Counted from the first letter of the stretch, positions 766 through 58,944 are shown. The stretch is 64,000 nucleotides of DNA from Marsupella aquatica (GCA_973895155.1 OZ316899.1:9484287-9548286), one strand, 5' to 3'. Notes: generated by a model from the sequence alone, not told the origin. Numbers and translations: made by a program.

Positions 766-1842
766 ATGAGTGACTCGAAGGATACTGGAAGAATTGGCGT
801 CGGTAGAGCTTTAGGATCGCGACGGTCAAACGGAGAGTCTGAGGAGGAGCTGCTACCGTTTGAGGAGGAACTTGTAACACCGGTACGATCACCATTGCGG
901 TGTGCAATGGAGGAAGCTGTGCTACTACCAGAGCTGTTGGTAGTGGGGAAGAAGAGGGAGATGACTAGATTTGGAGGAGTGAAGTTTGAGGTGGAGAAGT
1001 ACGATGGTCGTACTGATTACTTGCTCTGCGAGAAGCAAGTGAAGGGTGTCCTTTGGGCCATGGGCTTAGCTCATCTGCTTTCTTCGCGAGAGCAGTATGA
1101 TGGAGAGGAGGAGATTTCTGTAGGACAATGGAGACAGGAGTAGGTGATTGTTGTTAATGTAGTGATGCTTTATATCAAGCCACACATCATCAAGCAGCTG
1201 GATGATTATGCGGATTACGCATCATTGTTCAAGGCTCTAAGAGAGAAGTACTACCGGGAAGATACGTCAGACCAGTTGTACAAGAAGTCTCTCTTGATGA
1301 GTCTCAGGCTCAAGGAAGGGAGCAAGATGCAGGATCATCTAGATGAGTTTGACAGTCTAGCGGTGGATCTGTCAAACCTAGGAAAATGAGTTGAAGATGA
1401 GGATAAGGCCTTGCTTCTGCTAAGCTCCTTACCGCCATCATATCAGGGCTTGAAACAGGTGCTCTTGTACAGAGATCTGAAGTCCATTTCATATAATGAG
1501 GTGGTGAGCTCCTTGTTGTCTGATGATGCTCAAAAGAAGTTGGGTCAATCACAGACAGCATCTTCTTCTGGCACTGCGTTGAACGTGAACCGTGGGAGAG
1601 CAGCGCAGTGGTCAAATGGACAAAACAGGTTTAGATCTACATCACAGGGGAGATCTAAATCCAGAGGGAAATCGCAAGAGAGGAAGCCTCTTGCATGTTG
1701 GAATTATGGCAAGCCTGGCCACATGAAAAGGGATTGTCGAGTAAAGATCCCTACTGCATCTGCTAAAAAGGCATCGAGCTCGCATGAGGTAGATTTACTC
1801 GCTGATGATGACATATTGTGATGTCAAGGTTATGCTCTCAAT
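766..1842 (+). pseudogene. gag: Copia gag (UBN2/retrotransposon gag, zinc knuckle), with several in-frame stops
   Basis: KFEVEKYDGRTDYLL, MQDHLDEFDSLAVDLSNLG, LLLSSLPPSY, degenerate knuckle CWNYGKPGHMKRDC. Confidence 0.9.
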
Positions 1843-1893
1843 ATAAGCCTATTCATTAAAAGTGTATTTTCTTTTGTTCACAAATCAGCCCTG

Positions 1894-1975
1894 AAATGTA
1901 CACTTTTATGTCCCCAAATGTACACTTTACGAAGCCCAAATGTACACTTTTTGATACCTAAATGTACACTTTATA
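1894..1975. repeat. Left subterminal AAATGTACACTTT repeats of the Sola-like element
   Basis: Four near-palindromic AAATGTACACTTT copies; the same motif recurs at 23916-24240 and 58996-59075. Confidence 0.85.
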
Positions 1976-2232
1976 GGCCAAATCTTATTAGTATTATATT
2001 AATATATTATATTATATTAATTATAATAGTATTATATTACTTATTAGTTCACAAAGAACCATGGGATAGAGATCATACTTGTAAAAACATTTCCGCACAA
2101 AGAAGCCCAGGCAAGGACCATTGATTGACAATGTGTGAAAATAATTATATACAATTGTGTCCAAACTTACAATGAATATCCAGGGCTGGCACCCATTTTT
2201 ACTATCTAATGGGCTTAACATGAGTCAGATCT

Positions 2233-3236
2233 CTAAACAAAGTGCTCCTTACAATATTTATTTGAGCACGTGCCTTTGTCTCCTTTACTATCTACCCTAA
2301 TGTCACGGTTGCAACTCCCTTTATCTTCAGGGAGATGAAATTTGGTGGTGTTGTTCCTAACTGCTATAATCTCCCGCAAAAAGTGTCTGGGATTTTCTCT
2401 ATACAGACCTGAATATTCCCGTCCTACAAATGATCTAGCAAGTGAGGTGACAAGTGCATCGTCAAGTTCCACCTCGGGATGTAAGCTACATATACGGTGC
2501 TTCACAGCCCAAGGAATCTAATTGCTATTGAGGTCCAGCACACTATGCCTATATTGTGACTTCCAAATTTTGGCTGCACATCTCTTACTAAGTTGATCAT
2601 AAGTAATCTCATTTTTTGCCTTGTCTCTCTTAATGTGCAATAGAGACCACTTTGGAGAGTTAGGAGAAGATAACAATGAATGTCACTTGCATGTGACAGT
2701 TTCTCAAGACATGGCCAAAGAATTGTTAGAAGAAAATTGTCTCCACGATTGGCATGCGTGTAGGGCACTGGAAATAGTCCGGTCATGTCTGGGTTGGCAA
2801 ATGCCTTCAAGGGGGAGTCATCCACAAGGAGTGTGTTGGTTTCATCATATATATTTCCAAATGCAATTGTGAACATCATGTTCAACATTTTCACTGTTTG
2901 CGGCATCCCAGCACATGTCCAAATTGCAATGTCAAACCGATCAAAAACCAACTTTAGAAACTCATGGAGCCCTGGCCTCTCTATATACATGCGACTAGTT
3001 CCATTTGATCTATCCCAATGCACTCCACTTGAGGTGACAATCCTGGATGTGCCCTTGCTTTGGAATTCAATAGAATCCCAAAGTATTTTATTAAGGTCCA
3101 AAATCAGCAACTTCCGCTTGACGGGACCAGGTCTCGATTCTGCAAGTGCACCAAACACCATTCTCAGAGAAAAGACCAAAAGTGAACTTTGGATTAGGAT
3201 TGTCTCAGTCCAAAAATACAAGACAATGGCTGACAA
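2233..3236 (-). pseudogene. FCP1/NIF-family HAD phosphatase (TE cargo, copy 1; internal deletion and frameshift)
   Basis: KLLILDLNKILWDS, ERPGLHEFLKLVFDRFDIAIWT, NTLLVDDSPLKAFANP. It lacks about 43 aa present in copy 2. Confidence 0.85.
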
Positions 3237-3378
3237 AAAAGAAAATTAACCTACATACCGTTTTTAGAAGCCTCACAATGTGTAGACGGATATGGAGACT
3301 TTAATTGGTGAGTGCATTCTATGAGACCGAGAAGTATTTTAGATTGATATGAATAAATACAAAGTCAAAGGCTGAATT

Positions 3379-6300
3379 TCATTCCGAAATAAGGTCTCCA
3401 TATTCATCAATAATCATGTCAGCACCAAGCTCCTGTTGGATTTCAAAATTGACATCTGAAGTACTTTGTTCTACCCAATAAGGTGAAGTCCAAACAGGAG
3501 TTATCAACCCCAATTCTCCACTCTTATACTCCTCCTTATTGAGAATTGAAGGAGCAGCATCCAATGATATTTCTTGGCCTCGATTTGGCCCACTTTTCCA
3601 CACGTAACATCGTGCGTCGCATTCCAATGACCTCCATCCAGTTGATCCAACTCTATTTCCTTTCTTTTTTGAGAGCGGAAGGACAATAGGACTCCCCGAG
3701 TGTGAACGAACGAACACCAATTTGTCATCAAAAGCTGAAAAGAGTGTGTCAGGACAAGTTGAAGCACCTGCCTGGTTGTCAGCAGCCGTTGATGCATATC
3801 CTCCTGGATTGATCGGAATGTCAGGCAATCCGCCAGTCTCCCCCTCGGTCTCCCCCCGAGTCAATTCTTTAGTTTCAGCTTCATTTGAATCTCCAAGTCT
3901 TGTTGCGCCTTCATTGATCAGATTGGTTGAAGAAAGATGATCAAACGTATCAACCCTTGCTCCTTCCAGTTGCTCCATCTGTCCTCCCGACGTTGTTGGA
4001 TTGGGATCATCCTTGTCCAAGTTATCATCAACTTGAACTTCATTGGGCCCCGGAGGGATGTCATCTAAACCAGATGAACGGTTTGGTGCAAGTCCAATAT
4101 CATCATCTACATCGTAAGGCTCACCTTGACCAACACGGTCATCCAAATTCTTGACATATGCCTCCTCTGATGCCTCTACGCCTTCAGCCACTTTGTCAGC
4201 AACATCTTCAGACTCAGAACCATCGGATTCAATAGCGACAGCTATAGCCGCAACAATGGTAGCCCATTGTCGAGAATTTTCAGCAAGTGATTCACAATGA
4301 GCTTTAAGTGAGGGAACTCTCTCGCAAAGGTAGGAAGCAAAAGCTTCCACAAAATGCCTCTCGGAGTGAGAGTCACAATAAACAAAGCATTCCCTATCGC
4401 AAAAAAATGATGTCTTCATGACTTGGCCACCGGAGAAAAAATCTAGAACCAAATCTCCCGGTTCTGACAAGGATTCAATAATCCTTCGGATCATTCGCGT
4501 GGGTTTGGCATGAGGATTAACCCACCCTCCGCGACTGCCAACTGTCTCAAATCGAGGGGCCATATTCATAATCTTGACGGCCTCTTCCGGGTCCAAAACC
4601 ACTTTTAGGTCGTCGTTTTGTGTCCCCTCATCTGATTCCTTAGCCTTCCCCTTTCCCTTGGCGATCTTGCATACTTCGTAATCAACATCCTTTGCAGTAT
4701 ACAAGAATTTTGGCTTTGGATAGTTGGGCTTGAAAACTTCATTCCAATTGACGTCTTAGTCTCGAGAAATCCCCGCAAAGATAACTTCTTCAATCCCCCC
4801 ACCCCAACATGAGTCATGAGGGTGCGGTTGATCATCTCGAGAATAACTCCCATACTCAATGTGAATGGTCAAAGCTTTCTCTTGTCCCAGTTTACGAAGG
4901 GCACCATGGACATTCAATGCAAGTTGTCCAGGATGAACTGTTATCGTCACAACAATCGTGGGATTTTGTGGAAGCTCCACAATGTATTCAAAGAGAACAA
5001 GAATCTTTGCTTCAGTCCATTGTTTTTGCGGAAGCCGGCTAAAATCAACAATGGCAAGAGGGCAGGTCGGAGGAGCTTCTTGCAATGACTTTGGATCAAT
5101 GGTCTTCATGAGATTGTCGCTAAAAAATGTAGCCCATGGTAGGGTCCAAGAACATGATCCTCCGCCAAATTTCTGGCAGTATATATCATCTAGGCGGAAT
5201 GCCAATGTCGTCGGCAAGATTGCGCTCTCCCGCGTATGATTTGGTTTTAAAAGGTTGGCAAGATAGACCTCGCCAGCGACTCTTCGACACCTGTTGAACT
5301 CTGAATCAATTGCTAGCGTAGGAAGAACCTCCACTACTTTCCCCCAATTAGTATTTGTCGGGAAATTCATCACATCCTTGGTGCAATAGTAGTCTTCAAT
5401 AAGGGACTTCAGTTTCCGCACGATCTTCACATCTTTGGCCAACTCCTCTATAGATGGCATGTCTGATTTATTAGAGGCATCTTTCTTTAGCAATACCTTT
5501 CCTGACTTCACCCGCGTCAGTATTCTTGTGATGTCTCGTTGTGAGATCAACTCACCATCAAAACAACAAAACATGGCAACAGTAATTGCTTTTTCAGACT
5601 TCTCATTTCCTTCTACCCCAGCTCCATCGGGAAGTTTCCCATCCAACCACAACTGGCATACCAAACTCCATAACTCAAAAAGAGCATCGTCCGCAAACAG
5701 TAACCAGTAAAAATTTCGACAATCTTTCCTCCCCATGGTCATTCTTGCAAGAGCCAACCAATCCTACAATTGCAAAGGAAAGTCTGTTAGTTCTCCATAA
5801 CTCAATTGTTTGATAGCACTCAGGTGCGGATTGAGACCATCCCAGTCCAACACAGAACTAGACAGTATCAGTGGAAATATTCTATTGAATGTGCATGATT
5901 TAGTTTGGACTGGGACCATCCCAGTCCAGAACAAAAGTAGACAGTATTAGTGGAAAAATAATCTATTGAATGTGTATGAATCCATTTGGATTGGGACCAT
6001 CCCAGTCCAACGCAAAACTAGGCGATATCAATGGAAATATTCTACTGAATGTGCATGAATCCATTTGGACTGGGACCATCCCAGTCCAACACAAAACTAG
6101 ACGATATCAGTGGACAAAGATTCTACTGAATGTGCATGAATCCATTTGGACTGGGACCATCCTAGTCCAACGCAAAACTAGGCGATATCAGTGGAAATAT
6201 TCTACTAAATGTGCATGAATCTACGGTATTGTACCCATCAAGCAGTAACACTTTGTACCTGAAATTTTTGATTGTCTTGAGCGTTTGTTTTGTTGTCCCC

Positions 6301-7707
6301 ATGTTTTGGCCGGCTAGGTTTTCCACATTCCACAAATTGTCGCCTAGCATGAACTACTGTATCTTTGAAGCATGACTGAAACACCATCGTGCTATTGATC
6401 GCATTAGATCGCATTGAATGCTCAACTAATATTGACGATGGTGTTTGATGAGATAATATTCTTGACTTTTGAAATTCCAGCTTTTTCGCCAATGCTGTCA
6501 GCTTGGCATCCTTGTTTGCCCATTCTCAAATCCATCTGGCTGCTCTAGCCGGATGTTGACCGCTAATGGCAAGGAATTGAACCTCGCCCTTTTTCACGGC
6601 TGCTACAAAGTCCCTCCTATCTGATTCTGTGTTGTCATATTGCATTAGGTTTCTATGTTTTGTAGTGTAAGGAATCAAGTCTGCTATGTGTGGTTCATGC
6701 CCCGGATTTCTTATCATGGAATTGGCCACCTCCTTTACATGGTCTGCATTCAACATTCTGTAACAAAGTCTTGCCGACGCAGGGAAAATACTGTCTACAG
6801 GAATAGAAAATATCGAATTGATCCCAAACGTATAATATTGCTCCATTTGTTGCAATACCTCATTACCTTCTAAGACCTTCTTCTCCTCAAGAGTGTCCAA
6901 CTGCTCGTCCACATCTTGTGAATGCACTATCAGGTTTTCTGTAGTGTCATCCATGATGGCATTGTCAATTTTCTGTTTCTTCTTCTGTCTTGGTCTCTTT
7001 TCACTTGCACTCGGCTTCTCAACCGGACGTTTCTTCTCAACTGGCTTCTCAACTCAGCTTCTCGTACTCAGCTTCTCAACTGGCTTCTCAACTCGGCTTC
7101 TTGTACTCGGCTTCTCAACCGGAAGTTTCTTCTCAACCGGAGGTTTCCTTTGGCTTTGTTTTTGTTTTCCCACTGCTCTTTGAGAGGTCATTGCTGTAGT
7201 TCCCGCGGTCTCTGTTGTAGGTTCTGGAGCTTTCTTTGGCGCTTGCTTGGGCACAGGGTTTGTATTCACCGCTGGAAGCTTTCTCGTCTTGGACAAAGAT
7301 TCTATCCATTGCTTTGCTTTGACTAAATCAAACTTGGGAGCAAATGCAACATCCTTATCAATTAAAACACCAGGCTCCTCCAACTCCAACGATAACAATC
7401 CAGCTTTCTCAAGTAAATTGCTTAACGTCCAGGTAGTTGCAAAAGAAAAATTGCCTTGGTGCTTCATCATGTTGAGTTTCAAATATTAAAACCCATACAT
7501 AATGTCGACTGGAAGCATACCAGTTACCCCGACGACCAACTTCTTTGTGTCATAGGTCTTTGGAAAAAATCCCATTGACAAAACGCTCAATTCCCCACTT
7601 GCGTGCCATTCGACATTGAATTCAGAGGAGTATGCCTTTGACAGAAGGTTAACTTTAACCCAACAGGACTTATCGTGCATCTTGAGAATGACCGTATTCA
7701 TCCCTCT
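3379..7707 (-). pseudogene. 3' part of a multi-exon cargo gene: ParB/Srx-like domain, beta-class N6A/N4C DNA-methyltransferase-like domain, acidic tail
   Basis: ParB-like: IPVDSIFP..YRMLNADHVKEVANSM..FLAISGQHPARAARWI (~6540-6830). MTase motifs X/I/II: HAKPTRMIRRIIESLSEPGDLVLDFFSGG..DRECFVYCD (~4375-4515). Premature stops are present. Confidence 0.7.
5829..6216. repeat. Intronic tandem repeat, about five units of ~78-81 bp, each with the palindrome TTGGACTGGGA-CCA-TCCCAGTCCAA
   Basis: Read directly from the sequence; lies between exons of the ParB/MTase-like gene. Confidence 0.85.
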
Positions 7708-8038
7708 TGTCACACCATTATGAGTGGTAGTATAGGATATCGGACTATGTAGGTTTGAGGCTTTCATATGTGTGTTATCTAAGTGGTTTAGGGTTAGTGT
7801 ATGTTTGTGAGGGATAGTTATATATCTCTTTGTGTTGGCTCAAAGGTCTCATCTTTTGATGTTGAGCCTTTCGAGCACAAACTCTAGTGGCTATGGTGTG
7901 GCTGTCTAGGTTGTGTGTACGTAACGTGGATTCCTTGAGGCGCAAGGTGCGTTTGGCTTGACATAAGTGTGTGATCGCGTCAGACAAGATTGTGTGTTTG
8001 ATTGGCATCAATCGTTGTTCGATTATTCTTGAAGATTA
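7708..8038 (+). repeat. Repeat A1 (331 bp)
   Basis: Matches 16756-17086; I see two substitutions. Confidence 0.97.
7819..7862 (+). promoter_or_regulatory. Putative TATA box (TATATAT, 7819-7825) and transcript 5' end/self-primer (CTCATCTTTTGATGT, 7848-7862)
   Basis: The TATA lies 23-29 bp upstream of a 15-mer that is perfectly complementary to 8038-8052. Confidence 0.65.
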
Positions 8039-8052
8039 CATCAAAAGATGAG
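8038..8052 (+). promoter_or_regulatory. Self-priming primer-binding site (ACATCAAAAGATGAG)
   Basis: Immediately follows A1, has no TGG tRNA-type PBS, and is the exact reverse complement of 7848-7862. Confidence 0.8.
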
Positions 8053-8699
8053 CTTCAAACTCTGTTGTGCGGACTGTGCAGACAGAAGTTTGATTTCATT
8101 TTGGTTTTGTTGTTGACGATTCGTGGTAGCTCGGATCGGGTGTTGTTATTGAACGGATCGCTGGTATCTCGATCTATTGCAAGTTGGTGCGACGCTTGCG
8201 TAGTTCAAGTGAAGCTTCAAGTTGTTGTTGCTAAGTTGTGGTTTTGGAGTTGCGGTCTTCATCGATATGCGGTGTTGCATCGTGGAGGATTGATTGTGTG
8301 ATCGACAAGCGAATGTTGCTGTCGACAATTGTGTGTGAGACAGACGATGGTGTCTGGTCCTATTTTGTGAAGGGAAAGTAGTCGGATGTGCGACTCTTTG
8401 TGGTTTTGATTGAGGTGGTTCAATTGGGAGCCCGATAGTTGATTATGTTTACAATTTTTGTAGGATGCATTTCTGATTTGCATCAAGTTCCTTGTTGATG
8501 GATAGTGCGTTTCTATGAAGGAAACGACGTTGAATGTTGGTGAATTGTGTTGGCGGCGCGCGACAAGATAAGGCACCGCGGAGAGGCAAGGCGGCTGTGA
8601 CTTAGGGCACAAAGGAAATGACAAATACTGAATAGTGATTTTCCCGTCAATTGCGGCATGTTTAGCGCATGACTTGAGCAAAGAGAGTTTTGGTGGGGA

Positions 8700-9220
8700 G
8701 GCACCCACAGCCCGTGGCCTGTGACCAATTCATCTTGGTTGTGTGAGTTGGCACCCACAGCCCACGGCCTGTGACCTCTTGCAGCTTAGCTAGCACCCAC
8801 AGCCCACGGCCTGTGGCCTCTCATAGTTTGGTTGTGTGGGCTAGCACCCACAGCCCACGGCCTGTGGCCTCTCATAGTTTGGTTGTGTGGGTTGGCACCC
8901 ACAGCCCACGGCCTGTGGCCTCTTGTAGTTTGGTTGCATGGGTAGTCACCCACAGCCCATGGCTTGTGGCCGATTCATCTTGGTTGTGTGGGTTGGCACC
9001 CACAGCCCATGGCCTGTGGCCTCTTCTAGTTTGGTTGCGTGGGTAGTCACCCACAGCCCACGGCTTGTGGCCGATTCATCTTGGTTGTGTGGGTTGGCAC
9101 CCACAGCCCACGGCCTGTGGCCTCTTGAAGGTTGCGTGGGTAGTCACCCACAGCCCACGGCCTGTGGCTGATTCATCTTGTTTGTGTGGGTAGGTACCCA
9201 CAGCCCACGGCCTGTGGCCT
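8700..9220 (+). repeat. 5'-leader tandem array, 11 units of ~42-51 bp with the hairpin core CACCCACAGCCCACGGCCTGTGGCC
   Basis: Counted directly. Three more core copies lie in 63-bp units at ~13180-13370. Confidence 0.9.
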
Positions 9221-9297
9221 AGGGTTTTGGAATCACGGAGTCTTCCAATAATGCAAAGCTACTTGGTGAACAACGGACTGGTTTCACTCGAAGTGGA

Positions 9298-12200
9298 GTG
9301 CAATTTCGGCCAACGACATTGCTAGTAGATACTAGTAGAGCTTCAGATAGTGATTCTGACGAGGGCTCTGTAGTCAACTCTCCTCATCATCAGGTAGTTG
9401 CATCATTGTTGTGGGATATGGAGGAGACGTATGGGTCCACTAAGGGCCCTAGAAGATACTCTGGTGCAGTTGGCACAGTTGATTTGGATGATTTCATCCA
9501 AGAGTTTGATACGTGGTGTGATATGCAAACGATGCGTAACGCCACATTGTTTACACCTTTCATGGCATGGAAAGGGTTGTTTCAGCATTTGGAGGGTCCA
9601 CCCATGGATGATTACCATGAGTTTCGGAAGACCCATTTGGCTGATATTGAGATATGGAGACAACATTGGTCACCAAACTATGTGTCCATCACTTACGGCA
9701 CAAGTGCGGTTTCTCAATCTGTTGCCCCGGCTGTTGCTTCTTCTAGTAGCACTAGCCAGAGTGGCACTCCACCAGTATCCACTGTTACTCCTACCAGTGC
9801 AATTGTGGGTGGGAGTGGAGTTGTGCCAACATTTAACCCTGTGGTGAAGTTCTTTGATGTGTTGAAGCAGAACTACCAGGGTGTGAGAACTGATAAGTTG
9901 AAGGGTCTTCAAGATTTTCAGCGCAAGACTGGAGAGAGTCTACGCGAGGCATACACTCGTATGCAAAGATTAATTACAGTCACCAAGGGAGTGACAGAGG
10001 CCAAAGCAGTTCAATTTTGGTATGCAATTTTGGATAGAGAGTTGCGGCGTAGAGTAAGAGACGCCACTCTATTGAGGGATTCAGATCCCACATTGGCTAT
10101 TGTTTTTGCACTAGCCGAGCGCATTGAGCTCAATATGGTGAATGAGAAGGTGGTGACTTCCGGATTTGTCAAGGAAGGCTCACCAAAGGTTGCATCTACA
10201 CCCACACCGCAACCTACTATAAGGAAGAGCCAGAGGGAGAAGCCTACAACACGGGAATCTACTAGTCAGAGACCTGTGCCCTCCTATGCTGGACAGCAGT
10301 CAGGATGTTGGACTTGTGGTGGGGATCATGCACAAAGATATTGCCCGGATAATAGAGGGTCCGGAGGGGCATCTATGCCCGATCAACGATTATGTGATCA
10401 TTGTGGAGTTTCTGGTCACACCAAAGATAGGTGTTTTGTACTCCATCCTGAACTACGACGGGGAGGATCGCGTACATATGATCAGGGAAGAGGAGGTAGA
10501 GGTGGTGGTCGTGGACGAGGGATGCCACATGCAGGGAGACAACAAGGTGATGCTCCTGCCACTACCATAGATCCAAAAGATGCAAAGATTGCTCAATTGG
10601 AGCAACAACTAGCTGCCATGGCCAGTTCTCAGGTTAGACCTACTTTTGGTGATGGAGCTTCTACATCTTATGGAGCTGACGGAGACTTGGCCACCATGGG
10701 ATTCATGTGTGGCACTGCCCATGTTGACGCATCGGCAACTTTGACTAGAGGAGCAACCAAAGTCCTTGAGCCCCGAGGAGCAATGGTAGAGTTGGATCCT
10801 CAAAGGGGGGAGGCTCGTCAACAAACAAAGCTTCCTCAATCGTTTACGTTGTTAGAGGCAGTTCACACTACCTCTATGAACCCGGTTAAGACAAATCCAA
10901 GTGTTGATAAGTCGGTAAAATCGGATGATGTTGCAGCAGGTCTAGCAAGTACCTTGTTGGGGGCGGCCACTAACATTGTGCGCACCCCGTTATTTTCAGC
11001 AACAGATATATTGGCATTGGGAGTTAGTCCAGCTGAAGTGTTCAGATTGGCGGCCACATTATGTGAAGACACTCCAGTTGTTGCTTCTCGTGCAGAGACA
11101 ATGCATAAATCTGAAGTTGTGGAGTTGATTCCACCTATTGCTAGTGGTGAAACATGGCCAGCACCAGCGGCGAGGTTGATGGAGTTACCAGCACGCCCTG
11201 CCTTTGAGAGAACTAGGTTTAAACCTAGTGTGGTATCATTGGATAATCGGAGTGGTATCTTCCGATTAGTTGGGCCTTTTGGAGCAATATACCAGCCAGA
11301 ACGAGTGTTATTGGATACTGGTGCTCAGCCCTTGATGTTGGGTAAGTCTGCGATACAAGGATTGGGATTGTGTCCAGATGATTTGGAGGAGTGTCCTTTT
11401 CCCATTCAAACTTCATTGGGAGGACCTACACCCAAACAGCATATCACCAGACGAGCACTTGAACTTAGGATTCGAGAGGATCATCCAAAGGATAACTCAC
11501 GGATCCAGGCTCAAGCTATTTTGACTAAGGCTGAGTCGTATGATGTGTTAGTGGGATGTACAGTACTTTATCCTATGGGATTTGTTCTTGATTTTTGGGA
11601 TGAGTTGGTGTCGTATCGACCCGATTGGCAATCTGGAGATGCTCGATTGAGCCAATTGCCAGTGCGATTTAGTGGACCTGTGGGAGGTCCTAAATCTGCA
11701 CCATTGTCTTTGGCAGCATTCAGTAGTTTGATTACTGGATCTGATGAGTTGATTGAAGGTAATGCACATGCAGCAGATATTACGGCAATGGAGGAGCCAC
11801 GTGAGGAACACATGATGGGTGTATTACCTATTGATACCATTGTAGCACTAGTATGGGGTACTGGAGAGGCCTTGCAACAAAATGCGACCCAATTGATACA
11901 TGATGCCTGGCGTCATGCTTTTACACCGGAGTCAGGAGCACAACAGTCTTTTGCAGATGGACCGGTGACCCTTTCACCATTGGATACCACTCCTATTGTG
12001 TGGCAGTATCCAAAGGAGGGTATTTGTTTGTTGGATTTATTTGGTGGGATTAGCACTGGATTGGTTGCTATTCTTCAAGCAGGAATTCCTATGCGTCGTT
12101 ACTTGTACGTGGAAAATGATGAGATAACACGGAGGATCTCGCTACGTCATGTAGCGATGTTGGTGGAACGTTATCCACATTTGTTGCCAGTGGATGCCGT

Positions 12201-15200
12201 TCGTGGTTATCAGCATGCATTGCCTGCTGATATTTCATTATTGGGGGTGGATTATTTGGATCGTGTTGGCCCCATTGATTTGGTGATTGCGGGTTGGCCA
12301 TGTCAGGGTCAATCTCGGGCTGGAATTGGACATGGATTTCATGATCCAAGATCTGCATTATTTTGGGAGATGTTACGTGTGTTGCGCCATCTCCAGATGC
12401 ATCAGACACATTCTCCTGCATACATTTTGGAGAATGTCCCATTATTGGGTGACGATCGTCATCAAATTGTTGCTAGTGTTCATCAGGTTCGATCTTGGAT
12501 TGGACCTGCTGTGTTATTGGATGCTGCACGTGTGGGTTCTCGTGCACATCGTCCACGATTATGGTGGACTAACTTGTTACCATGTGAGGTCTTAAAGCGA
12601 GCATTTGATGGTGTACCTCGCTCAGCAACCTTAGTGGTGGATAGTATTTTGGATCCAGGGCGTCGTGCACAAAGTGTTACCCAATCTGATCGAACCCCAT
12701 TGGCAGTGGTGAATATTGTTGGGCGTCCGCGTTGTGCATTACCCACTTTTGTGAGCCATTCTGCTTCATACGCATTTCGAGCAGGTGGCACTGGACTTGT
12801 GTGGGATACAGCTCTACAACGATTAGTAGAGCCTACCGCTAATGAGAGAGGGCGGGCTATGGGATTTTTGACTAGCACCACTGCAGTGGCCTCGGTGTCG
12901 GAGCATTCACGTTGTCAAGTCCTTGGTCAAGCCATGGATTTGAATTGCTTGACTTGGATTATCAGCTTGGGATTAGCTGAACAATTGTGAATGCGCACTT
13001 CTAATGTTACAGATCGTCCATTGATGAGCTTGCGGCCTATTGAGACAGTAGCGGCCACAGCTGGGGGCGAGCAGATGATTGATGGACCTATGGCAAGATT
13101 GGCCAAGGTAGAACATATTGTTGAGCAGAAGGAGGTTGCTCAAACTATTGATAAATAGCAACGAGCGACTGACTCTTCCATCCATAGCCCACGGCTTGTG
13201 GCCTCTTCATCTCCAAAGGAAGACGTCACAGTTTTGATGGAGAGTCACAGCCCACGGCTTGTGGCCTCTTCAACTCCAACGGAAGACGTCACAACTTTGA
13301 AGGAGAGTCACAGCCCGCGGCTTGTGACCTCTTCAACTCCAAAGGAAGATGTCACAGCTTTGATGGAGAGTTGGGAACCACAGATTGGTCCTAAGTTGAC
13401 CTGGAGGGAGAGACGTTGCATGCATCAATTCTTGAAGAGTTATTGGAATTGTTTTGCATTTAGTATGAAGGATTTGGGGACATTGAAGGGTCCTGGTATT
13501 CAGATCGAATTGGCTAGTGATGCGCCAATCTTTCGACGACCGTATCGGTATAGTGACATGGAGAGGGCTTTGATCCAGAGTAGAACTCAGGATTTGTTGG
13601 AGGCTGGTTTGGTGGAGATCTCATACGGGGAGTATGCATCTGCCACAGTGATGCCAGCCAAGAAGGATGTGCATGGCAATTACACAGATAGGCGAATGTG
13701 TGGTGATTATCGACCTATTAATCGTCAGACAAAATCTGATCGATATGCCATGCCAACACCGGAGGAGATCTTTGATGCTATGGGGCATGCAAAGATATTT
13801 AGTTCGTTGGACCTCAAGGCGGGGTACCATCAATTGCCAATTAGGCATTCAGATAGATCCAAGACAGCATTTTGGGGAATTGATTCTTATGGCAAAGATC
13901 GTTTGTATCAGTGGTTGTTCTTACCATTTGGGTTGAAGAATGCACCAGCTGAATTCCAAAGAGTTATGGATCAAATTCTTGCAGGTTTGGATTTTGTGAG
14001 ATGTTACATTGATGATATTTTGGTCTATTCTTCGACTGTGGAAGAACATCAAAGACACTTGCAGATTGTGCTGGAGAGATTGAGAGAACATGGATTGAAA
14101 CTCCATCCTGGCAAATGTAAGTTCTTCCAAGACAAAATTGAGTATTTGGGCCACACTATCTACCCAGGAGGATTGGGTGTGCAAGAGACTAAGGTGGAGG
14201 CCATTACACAAATTCCTCGTCCTACTGATGTGAGTAGAGTACATGCATTCTTGGGATTGGCGAGCTATTATAGACGGTATGTGAAAGGATTTAGCCAACT
14301 TGCTAAACCTTTAACTATACTCACTAAGTTGGACCAGGAGTGGATTTGGGGTGACGACCAAGAGCATGCTTTCCAAGAATTGAAGGAAAGATTGGCGTCA
14401 ACACCTATTTTGAGAAGACCCGTTTCGGGACGACCATTTCAACTACACACTGATTGGAGTGGAGTAGGACTTGGAGCAGTGCTGACTCAGAAGGATGATG
14501 AGGGGAATGAGTTTGTTGTGGCATATGCCAGTAGATCAAACAATTCAGCAGAGGCTAAGTATAGCTCGTATGAGGGAGAGTGTTTGGCAGCTGTGTGGGC
14601 TGTGGCACATTTCCGTTGCTATTTGTTTGGTAATCCGTTCACCTTGATCACTGATCACCAGCCCCTCAAGTGGTTAATGGAGTCTAACAAGCTTACAGGA
14701 AAGCTTGCAGCACGATGGGCATTGTTGTTACAAGAGTATGATTTCCAGGTTGTACATAGGCCTGGTAAAGTGAACTTGGATGCGGATGGGTTGAGCCGTA
14801 ATCCATGTACCAGTCAAGAGGATGAGACTGGAGCTCGATGGCATGATGAGTCGGATAAGGAGAGTGTGCCAGGATGGCATGCATCTGCCTTTCTTTGTTG
14901 GGTTCCAACATATAGTGGATCTATGGACTCTACTTCATTGGATGGGGTAGACGTTGAGTCTTAAGATATGGATGTTGATGAGGTAGTTTTTGGGCAGCAA
15001 GATATTCATAACGACAAAAGAGTGTTGGAATATTTGCGTGGTGGCTCCATTGTTGGCAATTGTGATGCTAAGGAGCGCGATAGGGTTCTACAACGAGCCA
15101 AGAGGTTTCGATGGGAAGGAAACCATCTTTTGAGGATACTACGTGATGGCAAGGTGTTGGTTGTACCAAAACCGTCACAACGAGTACGTTTGGTGCGACA

Positions 15201-16443
15201 TGCGCACGAGGAGTTGGGTCACTTTGGTGTGAAACGCACATATAGCTTGTTGCAGACACAGTATTGGTGGCGTGGTATGCGCACTGAGGTCCAACAATTG
15301 ATTGCTAAGTGGGTGGTATGTGATCGAGTGCGAGCATCGTTCAATGCTCCCACTCCCCAATTGCATCCGCTATCGATAATGGGTTTGGGATATCGATGGA
15401 GTTTGGACTTTGCTGGTCCATTACCTCTTACCCAACGTCATAATCGATATATTTTGGTTATGGTGGAGCACTTCTCCAAGTGGATTGAACTAGTGGCATT
15501 GCCAGATAAAGCTAGTGGAGGAGTGGCTATCACATTTTTGGATCGAGTACTCAGTCATTTTGGAGCACCAGCTGAGGTGTTGACTGATCAGGGTACGGAA
15601 TTTTGTGGAGAGTTTGAGGGTTTGTGTGAGAAAGCTCTTATTGATCATCGTACTACTTCTCGTGATCATCTAGAGGCAGATGGATTGGCAGAGAGAGTTG
15701 TACAAACCGTGAAGAGAGGATTGCGTAAGTATGGCTTGCAGGTTGGTCATTTGGGAGATTGGGATCTCCAGCTACCTTGGTTAGCTATGGGCTACCGTTT
15801 TAGTCGACAAGCATCACTTGCATCCTTCTCACCTTATTTCTTGCTCTATGGTAGAGAGCCAGATTTGCCAGCGGCTATTCGTCGTGATGTGGCAATTGTT
15901 GTGGATTTGGACGATCCCGATGTTTTGGTCAAGGTGTGTTCAGAAAGGGCACGAGTTTTCGAGAGAGTCATGCCCATGGCCTTTGACAACCTTGCCATTG
16001 CCCAACATCGTGATACTTTGAGGTATGCCACTATTCGTGGAGGAGGTTATCGTGCGACGATTCGACGGTTTCATCCTGGTGATTTTGTTTATTTGCAGCA
16101 AACAGCACCCACGACACTTGATGTGACCACAGGTCGGACAATCTTACGTGTGCGTGAAGTGTTATCTTCTGGTGTCCTAATGTTGGAAGGACGTGATGGT
16201 ATGGTTTGGAAGGATCATGTGCGCAATTGTGCACCATGTCATCTTTCAAACATTGACGGTACTGTAGATCCAAGTTTGGCTCATGTTCGTGCCGGCTTGA
16301 AGTGTATGTTGTGTGGATCTGCTCAAGGAGCAGCCACTATGTTGATTTGTGATAAGTGTTCTAGAGGATGGCACATGTCGTGTTTAACACCACCATTAGA
16401 GGAGATTCCTAGTGGATCATGGTTGTGTCCTCAATGTCGGTGA
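9298..16443 (+). pseudogene. Single-frame polyprotein Gag-PR-C5 DNA methyltransferase-RT-RNase H-integrase-PHD, with three premature stops
   Basis: Knuckles CWTCGGDHAQRYC and CDHCGVSGHTKDRC; PR LLDTGAQ; DNMT LDLFGG, GWPCQG, YILENV, HRPRLWW, RAMGF, LGQAM; RT YIDD; RH LHTDWS; IN SLDFAG/LTDQGTEF/GLAERVV; PHD CMLC..CDKC..HMSC..WLCPQC. The ORFs at 9298, 13198 and 14968 share one frame. Confidence 0.95.
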
Positions 16444-16607
16444 AGCCGACTAGTTACCATTGGTGTTCTCATGGAAGGTATAGATTGCAGGAAGGTGATC
16501 GATGGGGCTCACTTGCACCCGGCCTCCTGATCTCCACACTTAAAAAGGTGTATATCAACCTTGTAGAACTTATGGCTAGCTAGAGTTAGGGGACCTCACT
16601 CCCAGCT

Positions 16608-16616
16608 AGGGGGGCG
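16608..16616 (+). promoter_or_regulatory. Polypurine tract of the DNMT-gypsy element
   Basis: AGGGGGGCG immediately before AT-TGTGAG (start of B1). Confidence 0.75.
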
Positions 16617-16618
16617 AT

Positions 16619-16753
16619 TGTGAGTTTTGGACATGTGTGGATAGGAGTTCCACTTGTACTCCATTCTCTTATGTTTGTAATGTTGATTGTGACTATGCTT
16701 AGATATGTGTGACAAGCGATGTATGTTGTGTAGCGATGTTTATGCGCACGACA
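16619..16753 (+). repeat. Repeat B1 (135 bp), directly after the PPT
   Basis: Matches 17088-17220 apart from a 2-bp GT indel. Confidence 0.97.
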
Positions 16754-16755
16754 GC

Positions 16756-17086
16756 TGTCACACCATTATGAGTGGTAGTATAGGATATCGGACTATGTAG
16801 GTTTGAGGCTTTCATATATGTGTTATCTAAGTGGTTTAGGGTTAGTGTATGTTTGTGAGGGATAGTTATATATCTCTTTGTGTTGGCTCAAAGGTCTCAT
16901 CTTTTGATGTTGAGCCTTTCGAGCACAAACTCTAGCGGCTATGGTGTGGCTGTCTAGGTTGTGTGTACGTAACGTGGATTCCTTGAGGCGCAAGGTGCGT
17001 TTGGCTTGACATAAGTGTGTGATCGCGTCAGACAAGATTGTGTGTTTGATTGGCATCAATCGTTGTTCGATTATTCTTGAAGATTA
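16756..17086 (+). repeat. Repeat A2 (331 bp)
   Basis: Copy of 7708-8038, separated from B1 by the dinucleotide GC. Confidence 0.97.
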
Positions 17087-17087
17087 T

Positions 17088-17220
17088 TGTGAGTTTTGGA
17101 CATGTGTGGATAGGAGTTCCACTTGTACTCCATTCTCTTATGTTTGTAATGTTGATTGTGACTATGCTTAGATATGTGACAAGCGATGTATGTTGTGTAG
17201 CGATGTTTATGCGCACGACA
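17088..17220 (+). repeat. Repeat B2 (133 bp), forming the right terminus
   Basis: Copy of B1 ending CACGACA and followed by the TSD CTCT. Confidence 0.97.
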
Positions 17221-17937
17221 CTCTCCCTCCAATGCCAACAGAGACCACAGGTCCGCAAACAAAAGTCAGGCTATCATTTCCTCTGCACTTTAAGGTCAAA
17301 ACAGATTCAATCGTGGTTGATGGCACTTCATTATTAAGTGGGGTTTTTGAGAACTCAAGCCCCCATCAAAAGCGTGGGGATCTCTCATCTAGTAAGAATC
17401 CGTCCAGGCAGTGGGTCGGTGCAATCGCGGGTTTGAAAACAACAAGATCGCTCCCTGCATCATAAACGTCATCCATGTTAGACTTAAAACCTTTAAAACA
17501 TTCGAATAACTCTTGTTGGATTAGGATGGTCCTAGTCCAACTTGAGATGGTTTTAGACTTGCTCCTACAATCGGGATTCAATCTCCTAGATGGATTAGGA
17601 TCATCCGAGTCCAACTTTGGATTGGGATCATCCAAGTCCAACTTTGGATTGGGATGGTCCGAGTCCAAGTTTGGATTTGGATGGTCCGAGTCCAAGTTTG
17701 GATTGGGATGGTCCGAGTCCAAGTTTGGATTGGGATGGTCCGAGTCCAAGTTTGGATTGGGATGGTCCCAGTCCTCTAAGACTTAGGGAGGATAGGTGAT
17801 GGATACTTACTAGGGATTCGTGATTGAAATTGTCTGGAGTCTTTGAGTGCCAGTTCCACATTGTCGCTCATAGAGGAGAGGTCAAACTCCTCCGTTTCTT
17901 CCACGTAGGACATTACAAGGACGCAATTCGCTTCCAT
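17221..17937 (-). pseudogene. 5' part of the same cargo gene (possible OB-fold-like segment), split by the gypsy insertion
   Basis: Removing 7708-17220 and one CTCT restores LTFVCGPVVSVGIGGR|GMNTVILKMHDKSCWVKVNL in frame. Probable ATG at 17937, with a repeat-filled intron at ~17515-17775. Confidence 0.65.
17516..17775. repeat. 30-bp tandem repeat (TTGGATTGGGATGGTCCGAGTCCAAGTTTG-type), probably intronic
   Basis: Imperfect-palindrome units related to the 5829-6216 core. Confidence 0.88.
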
Positions 17938-18979: not shown

Positions 18980-19830
18980 GGTTGGTCTAGGATGGTCCTA
19001 GTCCAAGTTTGGATTAGGATCATCCGAGTCCAACTTTGCATTGGGATCATCTGAGTCCAACTTTGGATTGGGATCATACGAGTCCAAGTTTGAACTTGGA
19101 TGGTCCAAGTCCTAGTTTGGATTGGGATGGTCCGAGTCCAACTTTGGATTAGGATGGTCTGAGTCCAACTTTGGATTAGGATGGTCCGAGTCCAACTTTG
19201 GATTGGGATCATCCGAGTCCAAGTTTGAACTTGGATGGTCCGAGTCCAACTTTGGATTAGGATGGTCCGAGTCCAAATTTGGATTGGGATGGCCGAGTCC
19301 TAGTTTGGATTGGGATGGTCCGAGTCCAACTTTGGATTGGGATGGTCCGAGTCCAAGTTTGGACTTGGACGGTCCAAGTCCAAGTTTGGATTGGGACCAT
19401 CCCAATCCAAAGTTGGACTCGGATGGTCCAAGTCCTAGTTTGGATTGGGATGGTCCGAGTCCAACCTTGGACTGGGATGGTCCCAGTCCAAATCCAGAAT
19501 CGGAGGATCGTAGTCCAAATCCAGACTCAAAGGATTGCAGTCCAAATCCAGACTTGGATGGTCCCGGTCCAAATCCGGACTCGGATGGTCCCAGTCCAAA
19601 TCCAGAATTGGAGGATTGTAGTCCAAATCCAGACTCGGAGGATTGCAGTCCAAATCCAAACTTGGATGGTCCCGGTCCAAATCCGGACTCGGATGGTCCC
19701 AGGCCAAATCCAGAATTGGAGGATCGTAGTCAAAATCCAGACTCGGAGAATTGCAATCCTAATCCAGACTTGGATGGTCCCAGTCCAAATCCGGACTCGG
19801 ATGGTCCTAGTCCAAATCCAAAATTGGAGG
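18980..19830. repeat. Long array of the same 30-bp palindromic unit and derived higher-order variants
   Basis: Tandem TTGGATTGGGATGGTCCGAGTCCAAC units, a local inversion near 19385-19425, then GTCCAAATCC-based higher-order units. Confidence 0.9.
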
Positions 19831-19885: not shown

Positions 19886-22800
19886 GTGCAGGATAATAGG
19901 AAAAGGATGTCTCAAAGGTTTTCTAGGGGCGATTATGTTACCTTGACAATTGATGGTTACGACGTTGGAAATGGGACAGTTCAAAAGACAGATCCGCGAG
20001 AGAGTGTTCAAAATATTGTGTTGGGAGAGAATCAAATTGGGGTTCTCATTGAGAAGGCCTTTGGTGAGACTAGGAAGCTCCCTTTTCCAATGCCTAGGGC
20101 AGAAAATCTTCATGATGCCATTGACTCATGTGTCATTTGGGATATGTCATGTGCATATCGATCTGCGGATAAGATTACTCAAAAATGCATCAATATTGGT
20201 AGTTGTTCAACTTGAAAAGATAACAACATCCATAATTTTGCAAATGTAGAGGAGGATGCTTCGACCACCCTAAGGCCAGGCGATGAGGTTGAAATGTTTA
20301 TCTCTGGCCATTGTGTGGCCTTTGGAGTTGTTTTCAAGACCGATCCAATGGAGAGATGTCATAACATATTACTCGGTGAGTCTCGGGTTAGTGTAAAAGT
20401 CACAGATGTGATTCATGGTAGTAAGACTTTACCTTACGCACATGATGGAGCTGCAACAATTGAAGAGGCAAAGGGCTCCTGGGTTCTATGGGATGTGGTT
20501 GACGTCCACAATAAAGTATGGAATGTTGATATTGATGGGAGCAACAAATCTTCCTCTAAGAAGCAGAAGGACAAGGCAAATTTTGTTTCACAGTCTTGTT
20601 CGGCAAACACCACGGACACTAAGTGTGACTATTTTCATCGGGCAAACTGGATGTCAGAGTCGGTTGAACTCTACACTGGTTTGGATCAAACCAAAATGGT
20701 TGCCATTGGAACGATCACTGTCCCTCAAGTGACAGCAGCAGTTGATGATGAAATTCTTGGTGATGACCATGTTGGGATTGTTGTGAAAGATGTCGTGGCA
20801 GCACAATACTTTCCCAACATCCACAAGGGAGTAGTGAGTTTGATTCGATGGCGGATTGATTCAACAAAACTAGTTGCAAATGGAAAAATTTTGTCAAACA
20901 TTTTGGTGGAAGGTTCTGAGAGGATGGACTCAATGGATAGGGATGAACTCAATGCGGATGTAAGTGATAGAGGAGTACTGTGTTCAAGGCCGTACAATTT
21001 TAACAAGAGGAATCAAGTAGATCCGAATGAAAAGAAGAGGAGGTTGTTGGAAACCAAGGCAATTTCAAAAACAACAGAGGCGTCAATTGATGACGTGAAA
21101 AGAGAAAATTGTTGCAAGCAAAAATGTTGTCTCATTATGCCAAGGGAAAACATCGAAGATATTAGGATGGAATTTCATGGGATGTCAAGCGAGTCAAAAA
21201 TGTCACACATTTTCAACCTCTTTCACTATAGAGAGGATGATGTTCGTGATAAGGGACACCATGTTCTTAAGGGTATGGTCGTATGCAGACATGCATTTGC
21301 AATTATCCACGGTTTTAGCCACACCAAATATTATGATTACAAAAGGAGATACGTGGAGGGTTGCAAAATTGGGTTCCATGGCAATACGGGCTTGATGAAA
21401 ACAAGGGCAAATACCTTGCATGCACGAGCTCTGTTGGAGGCTTTTTTGACTTGAAATGCAGAGCCCATGCCTCATATGCCTTATGGAGGGGCACATGGGA
21501 CAGACTCTACTGAGTACCGTCTTCTGGCGTGTTACAAGAAGCTAGAGATTCTGGAAGATGTGAGAACAAAGATGAAGGAAAAAGGGCTTCCTCCTGTCAT
21601 AGAGAATACTCTCTACAAGATCTGGAGCAACTCATTTGCAAACTTCAGTTTTCATAAAGATGGTGCATTTGCCAAGTGTACTCTTTGTTGTGAATACAAA
21701 GACAGTTTGATGCGAGAAAGAAGGAAAAAAGAACGTGCTGAAATTGAAGAAAAGCGAGCGCAACATCTTCGTGAGCAAATGTCACGTAGATATGTTTACT
21801 ACGCTCATCGAGTGATGGCCAAACAACACCCAGGAGAATATCTTTGCGTTATTCACGACAAGATGGATCAAGCAAAGACATGGATTCCAAAAATGGTTAG
21901 TACTCCTAAATCTCTTTTGGGTCATGGAATGTCGCTACCTATTGCTCTCACAGGGATGTTGACCCACGGGAGGGATCCAGGAGAGTATGCACACTTTAGT
22001 GTCACTGGCCTTTGGCCAGGAGATGCCGATTTCACAGTTACATCCTTGGCTAAGTGTCTTCGAGACCTTGAAGAGTACAATGGAGACAAGACAGGTGACA
22101 TGTTGGATGGCCTTCATTGGGAACCTCACAGACCTTTCTTTGAAGCCCTACTTGACTTTGAAGCATTTTTGACGGGTTATTTGGAACCAAAGAATATACC
22201 GGTGAATACCTATTGGTTCTGAAGATGGAGCTGAGAGTCAGACTGAGACCGTCCCAAACCAACAAGATGAGGATGAAGGAGAAGACATGCAAGGAGAGCA
22301 AGGCAGTCCATCGTTCAAGCCCTTGCCAAGGCACCTAACATTGCAGATGGATAATTCAGCAAAGGACAACAAAAACCAGATTGTCATGGCATTTTGTAGC
22401 GAGCTTGTGAGTAGAGGAGTATTTGAAATTGTTCAAATGTCTTTTCTAATGGTTGGTCATACGCACGAAGATGTTGATGCACTCTTTTCAAAGGTATCAT
22501 ATCAAGTTCAACACAAAGAAGTTGCAACCCTCCTTGCTCTTATGGCAGAGGTATGGGAATGCGAGAGCATTCATCCAGTTCCCAGATTGATACAAGAAGT
22601 TGCATCTTACAAAGAATATCTTCAAACTTTCAAGGTGAAAGATATTCAAGGTCACTCAAAACCTGTATCATTTCTTTTCTCTATGAGAGATAATGTACCA
22701 ATATTTCAGTATAAGTCCCATGTAAAGCAAGCTTGGGCTCCAGTTGGTGGAAGGTGCATTTGGGCAACAGATCTGACAACAAATTCTCTTCTTTTACCTA

Positions 22801-23663
22801 GTGGAGAGCCCTTAGCTAAATCCATTGGAGAGATACACAAAAAATCTGAAGAGATTATCCCATTTCTTAACAAGTACCTTGATTTTTTGAGAAGGAGTTG
22901 CACTGATGAGACATCTATAGCATATAAGGAAAGATTTCCTCTTGTGAAATATTGGGAGAGAATTGTGGAGTTGTTGACAAATGGGCTCGCACTAGAAGGG
23001 GAGGGAAGTACTCAATTTCCCTTGAAAAACAGATTTTGGCCTAAGACCAACCACGGCACTGGTTACAAGGTCAACCAACCGGAACAAAGTGGTCCTCCAA
23101 GTGAAGATGAGGAGAATGCAGAGATAACAGCTCTTCAAAATGAGGTCTTGGAAGAGATGGAAGATCAAGCAACACCATTTGTTGGATCTCGAGCTGAGAG
23201 AGAACAAGGACGATGGATTCCTTTATAGGATATTTGTGAAGGAAACTTTGTATTTCTTCGACCCGAGGATGATTGGGAGAATAAAAATGGTGGAGGTCAT
23301 TTCTGGTTGGTGAGAGCTTTGGGTTTGGTGGACCCAAAGCATGAAGTCCCAACTACATCTTCAACAAACCCTTCTCTGCCTCGACAGTACGCTCCAATGT
23401 TCCCAGTTGAATGGTGGAGGCCTAAACACTCCAAACTTAATGTGACTGAGAGTGCGCGGTATCTAAATTGTTTCATGTCCACTAAGACATGGGAACGAGA
23501 TCCAGGGTTTGGTGAGAATACACAACATTGGCAGTATGCAAATTCTGCAATGTATGGTTTTAAATCTGGAATGAAAGAAGAAAACATGGCGGGCAGAGGT
23601 TTGAAAATCCCTCGAAATGTTCTACAAACTGTCCAAAATTATCTTCAAAGGATGGACAAGTAG
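19886..23663 (+). pseudogene. Sola-type DDD/E transposase with three N-terminal Tnp1/En/Spm-like domains; stops and frameshifts
   Basis: CCKQKCC, VCRHAFAIIHGFS, FAKCTLC, CVIHDKMDQAK, LTLQMDNSAKDNKN, SFLMVGHTHEDVDALFS. Confidence 0.8.
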
Positions 23664-58304: not shown

Positions 58305-58944
58305 CGGGCATCACCACCAAGACAGGAAACAGGAAAACAGGATTCCTCTTAATAAGAAAACAGGAAGTGGTACCAGTTAACATATGAAGTTTTCTGCCCA
58401 TTTTTTATGGAAAGGTAAGACTTGATTGGGTTCCTTGCAACAACAAAATTCAAATGTTGTATCTGTAATTGAAATACTTCTCCACCAAATACGCGTAAAC
58501 CATTGAGTGGGTCCCACTATACACAGGCTACTGAGATGAGGCACACTCAAAATGATACCAATCTTAAAAATATCATTGAAATCGGAACGGTACTATGTAA
58601 TAGTGCTAGGCGCTAACAAAAAAACAAAAAACAAATTTTTTTAACCCTTTAATATCAACTTCTTGCAAATTGACATACTAGTGTAAGAGTTTGAGATGAG
58701 ACCAAATCGATTGAACGGTGTTCCTAAATCCATAATTAAGTACACTTCAACGAAGTGTGAACTGGTTCAAGGGGTAGATTTATATCCCACGAGAAGAACT
58801 CAAATATAGGAAAGTTTGGAAATAAAAATTCCGTTCGCAAAGATAAGTACTGGAAAGCATTCGGACCATGAAATCAAACAGATACACTCAGAATGGGACA
58901 AACTGAAGCTAGCACCCGGCGCTAGCCATATCTAATAACCAAAT
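58305..58944 (+). mobile_element. Left end of another member of the MULE-like family
   Basis: CGGGCATCACCACCAAGACAGGAAACAGGAAAACAGG matches the 28188-type MITE end; degenerate TAGCGCCWGGCGCTA at ~58601 and ~58910. Confidence 0.55.

Follow-up and report, generated by a model that had tools for sequence, protein, structure and literature searches.

A streptophyte Ty3/gypsy family with permuted integrated ends: probable use of a DDE integrase site inside the long terminal repeat

We analysed a 64,000-nucleotide (nt) stretch of the Marsupella aquatica genome (GCA_973895155.1 OZ316899.1:9484287-9548286; "the window" hereafter means this whole stretch), which carries at positions 7708-17220 a Ty3/gypsy retroelement with a DDE integrase and split direct repeats. 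Searching the region for repeats and aligning it with the whole window by BLAST gave the layout A1…B1-GC-A2-B2, with all repeat units on the plus strand. A1 (7708-8037) and A2 (16756-17085) differ at two of 330 positions (7770 G/A and 7888 T/C; 99.4% identity), and B1 (16617-16753, 137 nt) and B2 (17086-17220, 135 nt) solely by a 2-nt TG slip. Between B1 and A2 lies a GC spacer (16754-16755) within the palindrome GACAGCTGTC (16750-16759). The element starts with TGTCAC and ends with CGACA, i.e., it has TG…CA termini, and is flanked on both sides by CTCT (7704-7707 and 17221-17224, plus strand), a 4-bp target-site duplication (TSD). Thus, the layout, termini and TSD described in an earlier note on this DNA were all reproduced. 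BLAST detected no further copy of A or B elsewhere in the 64,000 nt, and no uninterrupted paralogue of the target site was found within the window. Judging from the near identity of its A copies, the window copy is a recent insertion.

The coding region forms a single plus-strand frame (9298-16443) interrupted by three in-frame stops (TGA 12988, TAG 13156 and TAA 14962), and has the gene order Gag-PR-DNMT-RT-RH-IN-PHD, where PR denotes the protease, DNMT the DNA methyltransferase, RT the reverse transcriptase, RH the RNase H and IN the integrase. The first open reading frame (ORF; 9298-12990), which ends at TGA 12988, encodes Gag with two zinc knuckles (10306-10344 and 10393-10434), the protease (LDTGA, 11311-11325) and, between protease and RT, a C-5 DNA methyltransferase (12034-12990) that matches PF00145 with an E-value of 2.4e-11 and has motif I (12034), PCQ (12298) and ENV (12430) all present. 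The second (13198-14964), in the same frame as the first, encodes the RT (RVT_1; YIDD at 14005-14016) and the RNase H (RT_RNaseH), and the third (14968-16443) a DDE integrase made of an H2C2 zinc domain (Integrase_H2C2) and an rve core, with a PHD finger (16303-16437) at its C-terminus, the place of the chromodomain in chromoviruses. The tyrosine recombinase domain (PF00589) had no match in the three long ORFs. The domain search, together with a polypurine tract (PPT) adjoining B1, agrees with the earlier note in finding a DDE integrase and a PPT and no tyrosine recombinase; the methyltransferase domain, the PHD finger and the nature of the primer-binding site (PBS) were absent from that note. 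Since three in-frame stops break the polyprotein, the window copy is unlikely to be autonomous.

We located the long terminal repeat (LTR) made by reverse transcription from the positions of the PPT and the PBS. A polypurine run stands directly before B1 in every copy of the family described below: in the window it is TAGGGGGGCG (16607-16616, plus strand), whereas liverworts and one moss group have AGGGGGGCG, another group TGGGGGGGG, and Klebsormidium nitens GGAGGGGA. No TGG-initiated match typical of a tRNA-type PBS follows A1, and an ARAGORN scan of the window gave no tRNA gene. The 10-17 nt from the A1 boundary onward are, in 12 of 18 copies, a perfect complement of a site at position 113-170 of A; none of 500 shuffles was as good in 11 of these 12 copies, and 5 of 500 were in L063, while the remaining six of the 18 showed no significant perfect match. 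The site inside A is CTCATCTTTTGATGT in the window copy, AGTTCTCTAAGT in Calypogeia, CAGTTCTTCGAGT in Marchantia, AACATAGTTCTTTGAGT in L011 and L025, and AGTTTTTCTAGAATT in L055 and L073; as five subfamilies carry five different complementary sequences, the PBS and its partner in A covary. In the window, the putative PBS ACATCAAAAGATGAG (8038-8052, plus strand) adjoins A1, and its perfect complement (7848-7862, plus strand; 0/500 shuffles) is the predicted 5' end of the transcript and thus the candidate self-primer. A TATA-like motif precedes the A-internal site by about 22-33 nt (ATATATC at 7820-7826 on the plus strand of the window, 22-28 nt upstream of the predicted start, and at the same distance in relatives), and in the fold of the predicted RNA 7848-8060 at least the first 15 nt pair with the PBS (z = -4.1). 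The arrangement is therefore predicted to be self-priming of the Tf1 type, which has also been predicted in the plant Tcn1 clade, related to Tf1/sushi (PMC6317226).

Since the PPT precedes B and the predicted self-priming PBS directly follows A, the LTR defined by reverse transcription would be B-NN-A, in line with the earlier proposal that the true LTR is B+GC+A. Its U3 would consist of B, the two spacer nucleotides and the first ~140 nt of A, and its R-U5 of the remainder of A. B1 would thus be the 5' part of U3, and A1 the LTR portion lying 3' of the integrase site, namely, the distal U3 with the TATA box followed by R-U5. We also considered an LTR composed of A+B with a truncated 5' copy, and rejected it: the PPT adjoins B and not A, the PBS adjoins A, and the layout recurs in relatives.

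To what extent this layout belongs to the family as a whole was seen from its relatives. The IN-PHD protein has hundreds of homologues, none of them at 100% identity, many of which sit in Joint Genome Institute (JGI) metagenome contigs; identity is 76-79% in the liverworts Calypogeia fissa, Marchantia polymorpha and Riccia sorocarpa, 61% in Sphagnum, and 51-52% in K. nitens. We took 92 loci and mapped the A and B units on each with family probes. Seventeen copies, including that of the window, are complete and come from Marchantia, Calypogeia (a long-read assembly), moss-type metagenome contigs and the window (in what follows, int stands for the internal region). Ten have the form A-int-B-NN-A-B, with the TSDs CTCT (window), AAGG (L011), CATA (L043), ATGT (L063), ATAA (L082), GTCA (L086, Calypogeia long-read assembly), GGTT (L089, Marchantia chromosome 4) and CCGG (L090, Marchantia), a TSD matching at three of four bases in L073, and no TSD in L055. 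One Calypogeia copy (L092) is A-int-BA-BA-B with the TSD AGGT, and six are A-int-B, with the TSDs CCCC (L001, Calypogeia), TACA (L006), TGTG (L035), CCAA (L066) and GATT (L091, Marchantia), and none in L061. Perfect 4-bp TSDs are thus present in 14 of the 17, every one different, and all complete copies start with TGTCA (or one substitution off) and end with GACA. The 3' end B-NN-A-B was seen in about 20 more loci, including two of K. nitens (L003 and L004) and one of Riccia (L088). Accordingly, A…BAB is the normal genomic form of the family.

The same ends and TSDs in independent copies uphold the claim that this arrangement is what was inserted. As to the copy forms that had been predicted, the ends, the 4-bp TSDs, A-int-BAB and A-int-B were recovered, but ABA-int-B was not found in any copy, against 10-11 of A-int-BAB. 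Conventional BA…BA LTRs, for which the earlier note had proposed looking in other copies as a sign of a one-off event, occur in none of the 17 complete copies. The window does hold a single copy, as would be expected of an aberrant integration, a local rearrangement or an assembly artefact; however, the layout, ends and spacer recur in at least four other taxa whose assemblies are independent, the long-read assembly of Calypogeia among them, and the layout has also been reported for Klebsormidium (Fig. 4c legend in PMC5890265). These relatives refute such a reading, to which we assign a negligible probability.

Not all of these loci carry equal weight. The same insertions, recognised by identical flanks and differing by a few transitions, recur between metagenome samples (L009/L018/L032, L016/L027, L038/L039 and L072/L073), so that the metagenome contigs are not all independent copies. 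Single-B 3' ends in metagenome contigs were left out of the A-int-B count because assembly from short reads can pass directly from one B copy to its identical partner and omit the A loop. In Marchantia v3.1 (GCA_003032435.1), L090 and L091 share 8,048 bp without a difference (100% identity), at the same locus coordinates, yet differ at both ends, and L091 is therefore weak evidence; it also has a 1-kb tandem duplication that includes flank and A, and these oddities are probably an assembly effect. Self-comparison of L001 (Calypogeia) and L002 (Marchantia) showed no repeats, and L001 was later recognised as A-int-B through the family probes; L087 is a nest of other elements. In L092 (6855-16429, Calypogeia fissa), which reads A-int-B-GC-A-B-GC-A-B, the BA units differ by 2.2%, about the divergence between A1 and A2.

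The six A-int-B copies, five with perfect TSDs and one in a long-read assembly (L001), might be taken to mean that A-int-B is the primary product, made by cutting both LTR sites of a linear cDNA or the site of a 1-LTR circle, with B-A-B arising later. However, without a 3' copy of R another round would not be templated, and there would be no second A from which to rebuild B-A-B. Moreover, the youngest copies, with A copies 99.4% (window and L086) and 99% (L089) identical, are all A-int-BAB, and the n=0 and n=2 forms (A-int-B and A-int-BABAB) are both explained by unequal exchange between B1 and B2. We thus consider this order of events improbable.

The TSDs place the integrase ends at the start of A and at the end of B, and these two ends are abutted in each LTR as …CGACA-NN-TGTCA…. 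In 31 aligned sequences, which represent all subfamilies and K. nitens, CA and TG are in every case separated by exactly 2 nt (GC, AC, AA or GT), with substitutions but not a single indel in the spacer. In the window, the abutted ends form the palindrome GACA-GC-TGTC around the spacer (16750-16759, both strands), which we propose as the nick site, on both strands 3' of CA. Such nicks would leave recessed CA-3'OH ends with 2-nt 5' overhangs. A recessed CA-3'OH end with a 2-nt 5' overhang is the normal product of 3' processing by integrase. A precedent for the substrate is the palindromic junction of 2-LTR circles, which is cleaved by retroviral integrases (PMC1180852, PMC1905944, PMC4372172).

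The other joint of the tandem repeat, A2-B2 (17085-17086 in the window), leads from …GAAGATT, the U5 end, into ATTGTGAG…, the U3 start, and is the equivalent of the LTR-LTR junction of a circle. It is a precise blunt join in the window copy, in Calypogeia and in L043, and it varies by indels both between close relatives and among complete copies. Among 13 3' ends of one subfamily, the joint consists of the U5 end, 1-3 nt (A, AT, AAT or AAG) and the B start; the inserted A and AAT match the beginning of the PBS, as would be seen if the primer were removed to a variable extent. L073 carries a joint deletion, and L082 a possible microhomology. In the other moss group, L010 carries a 19-nt joint insertion (2669-2689) that duplicates a nearby stretch of A, its B2 starts deeper in the polypurine tract by 3 nt, and L021 shows a single additional base at the joint. 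In the first subfamily, four complete copies agree in their A1/PBS boundary and differ in their joints, and the joint types are scattered over the tree of the copies of this subfamily. These indels contrast with the indel-free B-NN-A site and PPT-B boundary in the same sequences. Since the A-B joint is never passed on through RNA, it would have to be remade in every cycle, and its variability is our main indirect evidence, drawn from sequence comparison, which would support either de novo end joining or an end-to-end template jump by RT but is no proof of a closed circle.

In the latter case, RT itself would make the tandem LTR, the plus strand, once it arrives at the minus strand's 5' end, jumping end to end onto the left LTR and recopying B or more in a rolling fashion, and integrase would then act on the CA-NN-TG site or sites of the extended molecule. 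The 1-3 PBS-derived nucleotides, the possible microhomology in L082 and the templated 19 nt in L010 fit such a jump and end joining equally well; its inherent asymmetry could account for the lack of ABA-int-B copies, and L092 has one additional BA unit. On the other hand, L092 is equally explained by unequal crossing-over, and joint deletions as in L073 look more like end joining; we regard such a jump as possible though rather unlikely. As a separate observation at this joint, the first G or Gs of B2 read A, while B1 keeps G, in five contigs of a moss group (L011, L018, L020, L021 and L032; AGTTGTG versus AATTGTG/AATTATA), two of which (L018 and L032) share a flank and are apparently one insertion; the change could be a terminal effect of plus-strand priming or result from later transitions.

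We propose, with a probability of roughly 60%, that these elements constitute a streptophyte Ty3/gypsy family whose DDE integrase uses a site inside the LTR and whose integration precursor is joined-LTR (circle-type) DNA, since integration through an LTR-internal site implies such DNA. Plus-strand synthesis would start from the PPT before B, and minus-strand synthesis from the PBS after A with the 5' end of the transcript as primer; ordinary reverse transcription from these sites would yield only BA-int-BA. The U5 end of this linear molecule would first be joined to its U3 start, giving the A-B joint and a tandem LTR similar to that of a 2-LTR circle. In the PBS-proximal LTR, integrase would then nick the CA-NN-TG site on both strands, 3' of CA, and the permuted A-int-B-NN-A-B would be inserted through a 4-bp staggered cut. 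Only this permutation could replicate again, because it keeps a 5' promoter with R and a full 3' U3-R. Of the earlier suggestion that a circle was integrated through a site inside one LTR, the internal site is borne out by the ends and TSDs, but the circular or tandem intermediate is something we infer, as are the nicking chemistry and the use of one LTR site only. Whether the DDE-integrase lineage of Klebsormidium, liverworts and mosses integrates obligatorily through abutted ends inside the LTR, and thus needs a joined-LTR intermediate, is a stronger statement, to which we give slightly better than even odds; integration from joined-LTR DNA appears to be the rule in the family.

Several points weigh against this proposal. 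All the evidence comes from integrated copies, and both the start of transcription and the poly(A) site are predictions. Unequal exchange between B1 and B2 would be expected to give the A-int-B and A-int-BABAB forms as its reciprocal products; as recombination of this kind after integration can explain both, they are uninformative on 1-LTR or multi-LTR circles, and in short-read metagenome contigs a single B at the 3' end may reflect repeat collapse. Two tight sister pairs in the tree share the same joint type, and some inheritance of the joint type could be involved in them. Finally, random cutting of a symmetric 2-LTR circle should produce ABA-int-B as frequently as A-int-BAB, and under equal odds the observed 0 versus 10-11 has a probability of about 0.001 or less. 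The bias in the choice of site must be mechanistic, because each integration leaves a copy, even a replication-dead ABA-int-B. The PBS-proximal LTR may become double-stranded well ahead of the PPT-proximal one and so be the first to be engaged by integrase; alternatively, the tandem LTR may result from RT over-running the end of its template, which is inherently asymmetric.

The earlier note knew of no described gypsy family that behaves in this way, which does not hold: KnitGypsy-Dnmt3 of the charophyte alga K. nitens, a Gypsy element with a Dnmt3 domain in Pol, was described by de Mendoza et al. 2018 (PMC5890265), where the legend of Fig. 4c states that its repeats are arranged as in DIRS elements and its domains as in Gypsy. 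The main-text passages of that paper that deal with this element make no mention of TSDs, PBS, PPT, a PHD finger or an integration mechanism, and we found no other description of this layout in integrase-bearing elements in the literature that we searched. KnitGypsy-Dnmt3, as depicted there, and the window element have in common a Gypsy polyprotein with a C-5 methyltransferase and A-coding-B-A-B repeats, and the K. nitens loci L003 and L004 share with it the CGACA-GC-TGTCA junction and IN-PHD. The integrase, however, is only ~51% identical, the window copy being of the liverwort type. By its domain set, layout and junction sequence, we suggest that the window element belongs with KnitGypsy-Dnmt3. 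On the DNMT side, homologues of the domain occur in at least 15 Marchantia gene models and are annotated there as ordinary genes (e.g., Mp_4g09160 and Mp_8g17980); no K. nitens protein was among the matches of this search, which applied a length filter. In the searched literature, the breadth of the family (Klebsormidium, liverworts and moss-type contigs), its TSDs, the predicted self-priming PBS, the conserved 2-nt-spaced internal integrase site and the variable joint appear to be undescribed.

The A1…B1-A2-B2 layout, with a redundant B-A unit that restores the ends, is shared with PAT, Ngaro, VIPER and SymbioDIRS. They encode a tyrosine recombinase but neither a DDE integrase nor a protease, and generally make no TSD. 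The window element, in contrast, combines a DDE integrase with TG…CA ends and a 4-bp TSD. A route like that of DIRS/PAT, in which the internal B-A serves as template for completing a cDNA that is single-stranded or circular, and in which the insertion is carried out by a recombinase that is not the DDE integrase, would account for a repeat layout as in PAT, Ngaro and SymbioDIRS, and DIRS-1 has been reported to use linear single-stranded cDNA (PMC7192593). However, there is no tyrosine recombinase in the element, its 4-bp TSDs and TG…CA ends are hallmarks of integration by a DDE enzyme, and the PPT and PBS occupy the positions usual for an LTR element, all of which makes such a route very improbable. 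With canonical Ty3/gypsy elements, the window element has in common the TG…CA ends, a TSD in the range of 4-6 bp, and a PBS and a PPT that adjoin the LTR when the unit is taken as B-NN-A, but its integrated ends are A and B rather than two identical terminal LTRs. The Tf1/sushi/Tcn1 elements (PMC6317226) likewise have a PBS complementary to the 5' end of their own transcript, as predicted here, and not to a tRNA; they differ in having conventional LTRs and a chromodomain, where the window element has permuted ends, a PHD finger and no chromodomain.

Integration through joined LTRs also has parallels among other DDE enzymes. With the 2-LTR circles of prototype foamy virus (PFV) and HIV-1 (PMC1180852, PMC1905944, PMC4372172), the family shares a CA…TG palindrome of abutted ends, and the regeneration of integration-competent ends by retroviral integrase nicking both strands of the palindrome can be likened to what we propose for the LTR-internal site. 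In retroviruses, the palindrome arises by circularisation, on a side path, whereas in this family every LTR contains it from the outset, with a 2-nt spacer, and circularisation would make a different joint, A-B, not the CA-NN-TG palindrome. An older circle model for retroviral integration is that of Panganiban and Temin, and insertion sequences of the IS3/IS30/IS911 type integrate from circles with abutted ends. In the latter, an enzyme of the same DDE superfamily likewise acts on two ends 2-3 bp apart; however, they are DNA transposons whose circle is formed by transposase action and not by reverse transcription.

The family thus separates the ends made by reverse transcription from those used by integrase, and makes an old question testable in a natural system, namely, whether joined-LTR DNA can be a regular integration precursor; Marchantia, a tractable model, carries young copies of 99% identity. 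If our proposal is true, the circle-junction pathway, no more than a side route for retroviruses, would be in routine natural use, and the family would form a structural bridge between LTR elements and DIRS/PAT elements. It also suggests how layouts of the DIRS/PAT type can be derived from ordinary LTR elements or converge with them. The cytosine methyltransferase that the element encodes and its histone-reading PHD finger bear on the interplay between transposons and host silencing. Since standard LTR finders would mis-call or miss the family (as a 331-bp 'LTR' pair plus a stray B), its abundance in bryophyte and charophyte genomes is probably under-annotated.

As for the insertion site, removing the element and one CTCT and translating the joined flanks gives an open minus-strand frame of 120 codons across the site. 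The earlier claim that a host reading frame is restored therefore stands for an ORF of this length but not for a gene: searched apart, neither half of the interrupted ORF has a Pfam match, and the flanks are rich in transposable elements, so that a host gene is not established at the site. This ORF lies between two sets of repeats, with ~80-bp repeats on the left (5828-6221) and 27-bp tandem repeats immediately to the right of the insertion (17564-17806), which occur again 1.2 kb further on (18982-19600). Elsewhere, the window contains a DUF7869 ORF (22287-23228), a Copia element (rve and RVT_2, 24775-26772), a CACTA transposase (tnp2, DUF4218 and DUF4216, 38836-42548) and a second Gypsy element (RT-RH-IN, 52944-55230), and is a repeat-rich region.

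Two further sets of repeats deserve mention. Within the element, the 5' untranslated region holds tandem repeats of ~51/101 bp (8693-9230, plus strand), and three in-frame 63-bp repeats (13183-13371, plus strand) lie between the DNMT and the RT; both arrays contain the common motif …CACAGCCCACGGC.TGTGGCC…, which is able to form a short hairpin. Towards the two ends of the window, the segments 1840-5770 and 58942-63032 are paralogous (72-84% identical, in the same orientation) and carry minus-strand ORFs with a NIF-type phosphatase domain and an N6/N4 DNA-methylase motif; they may represent another repeated element or a gene family.

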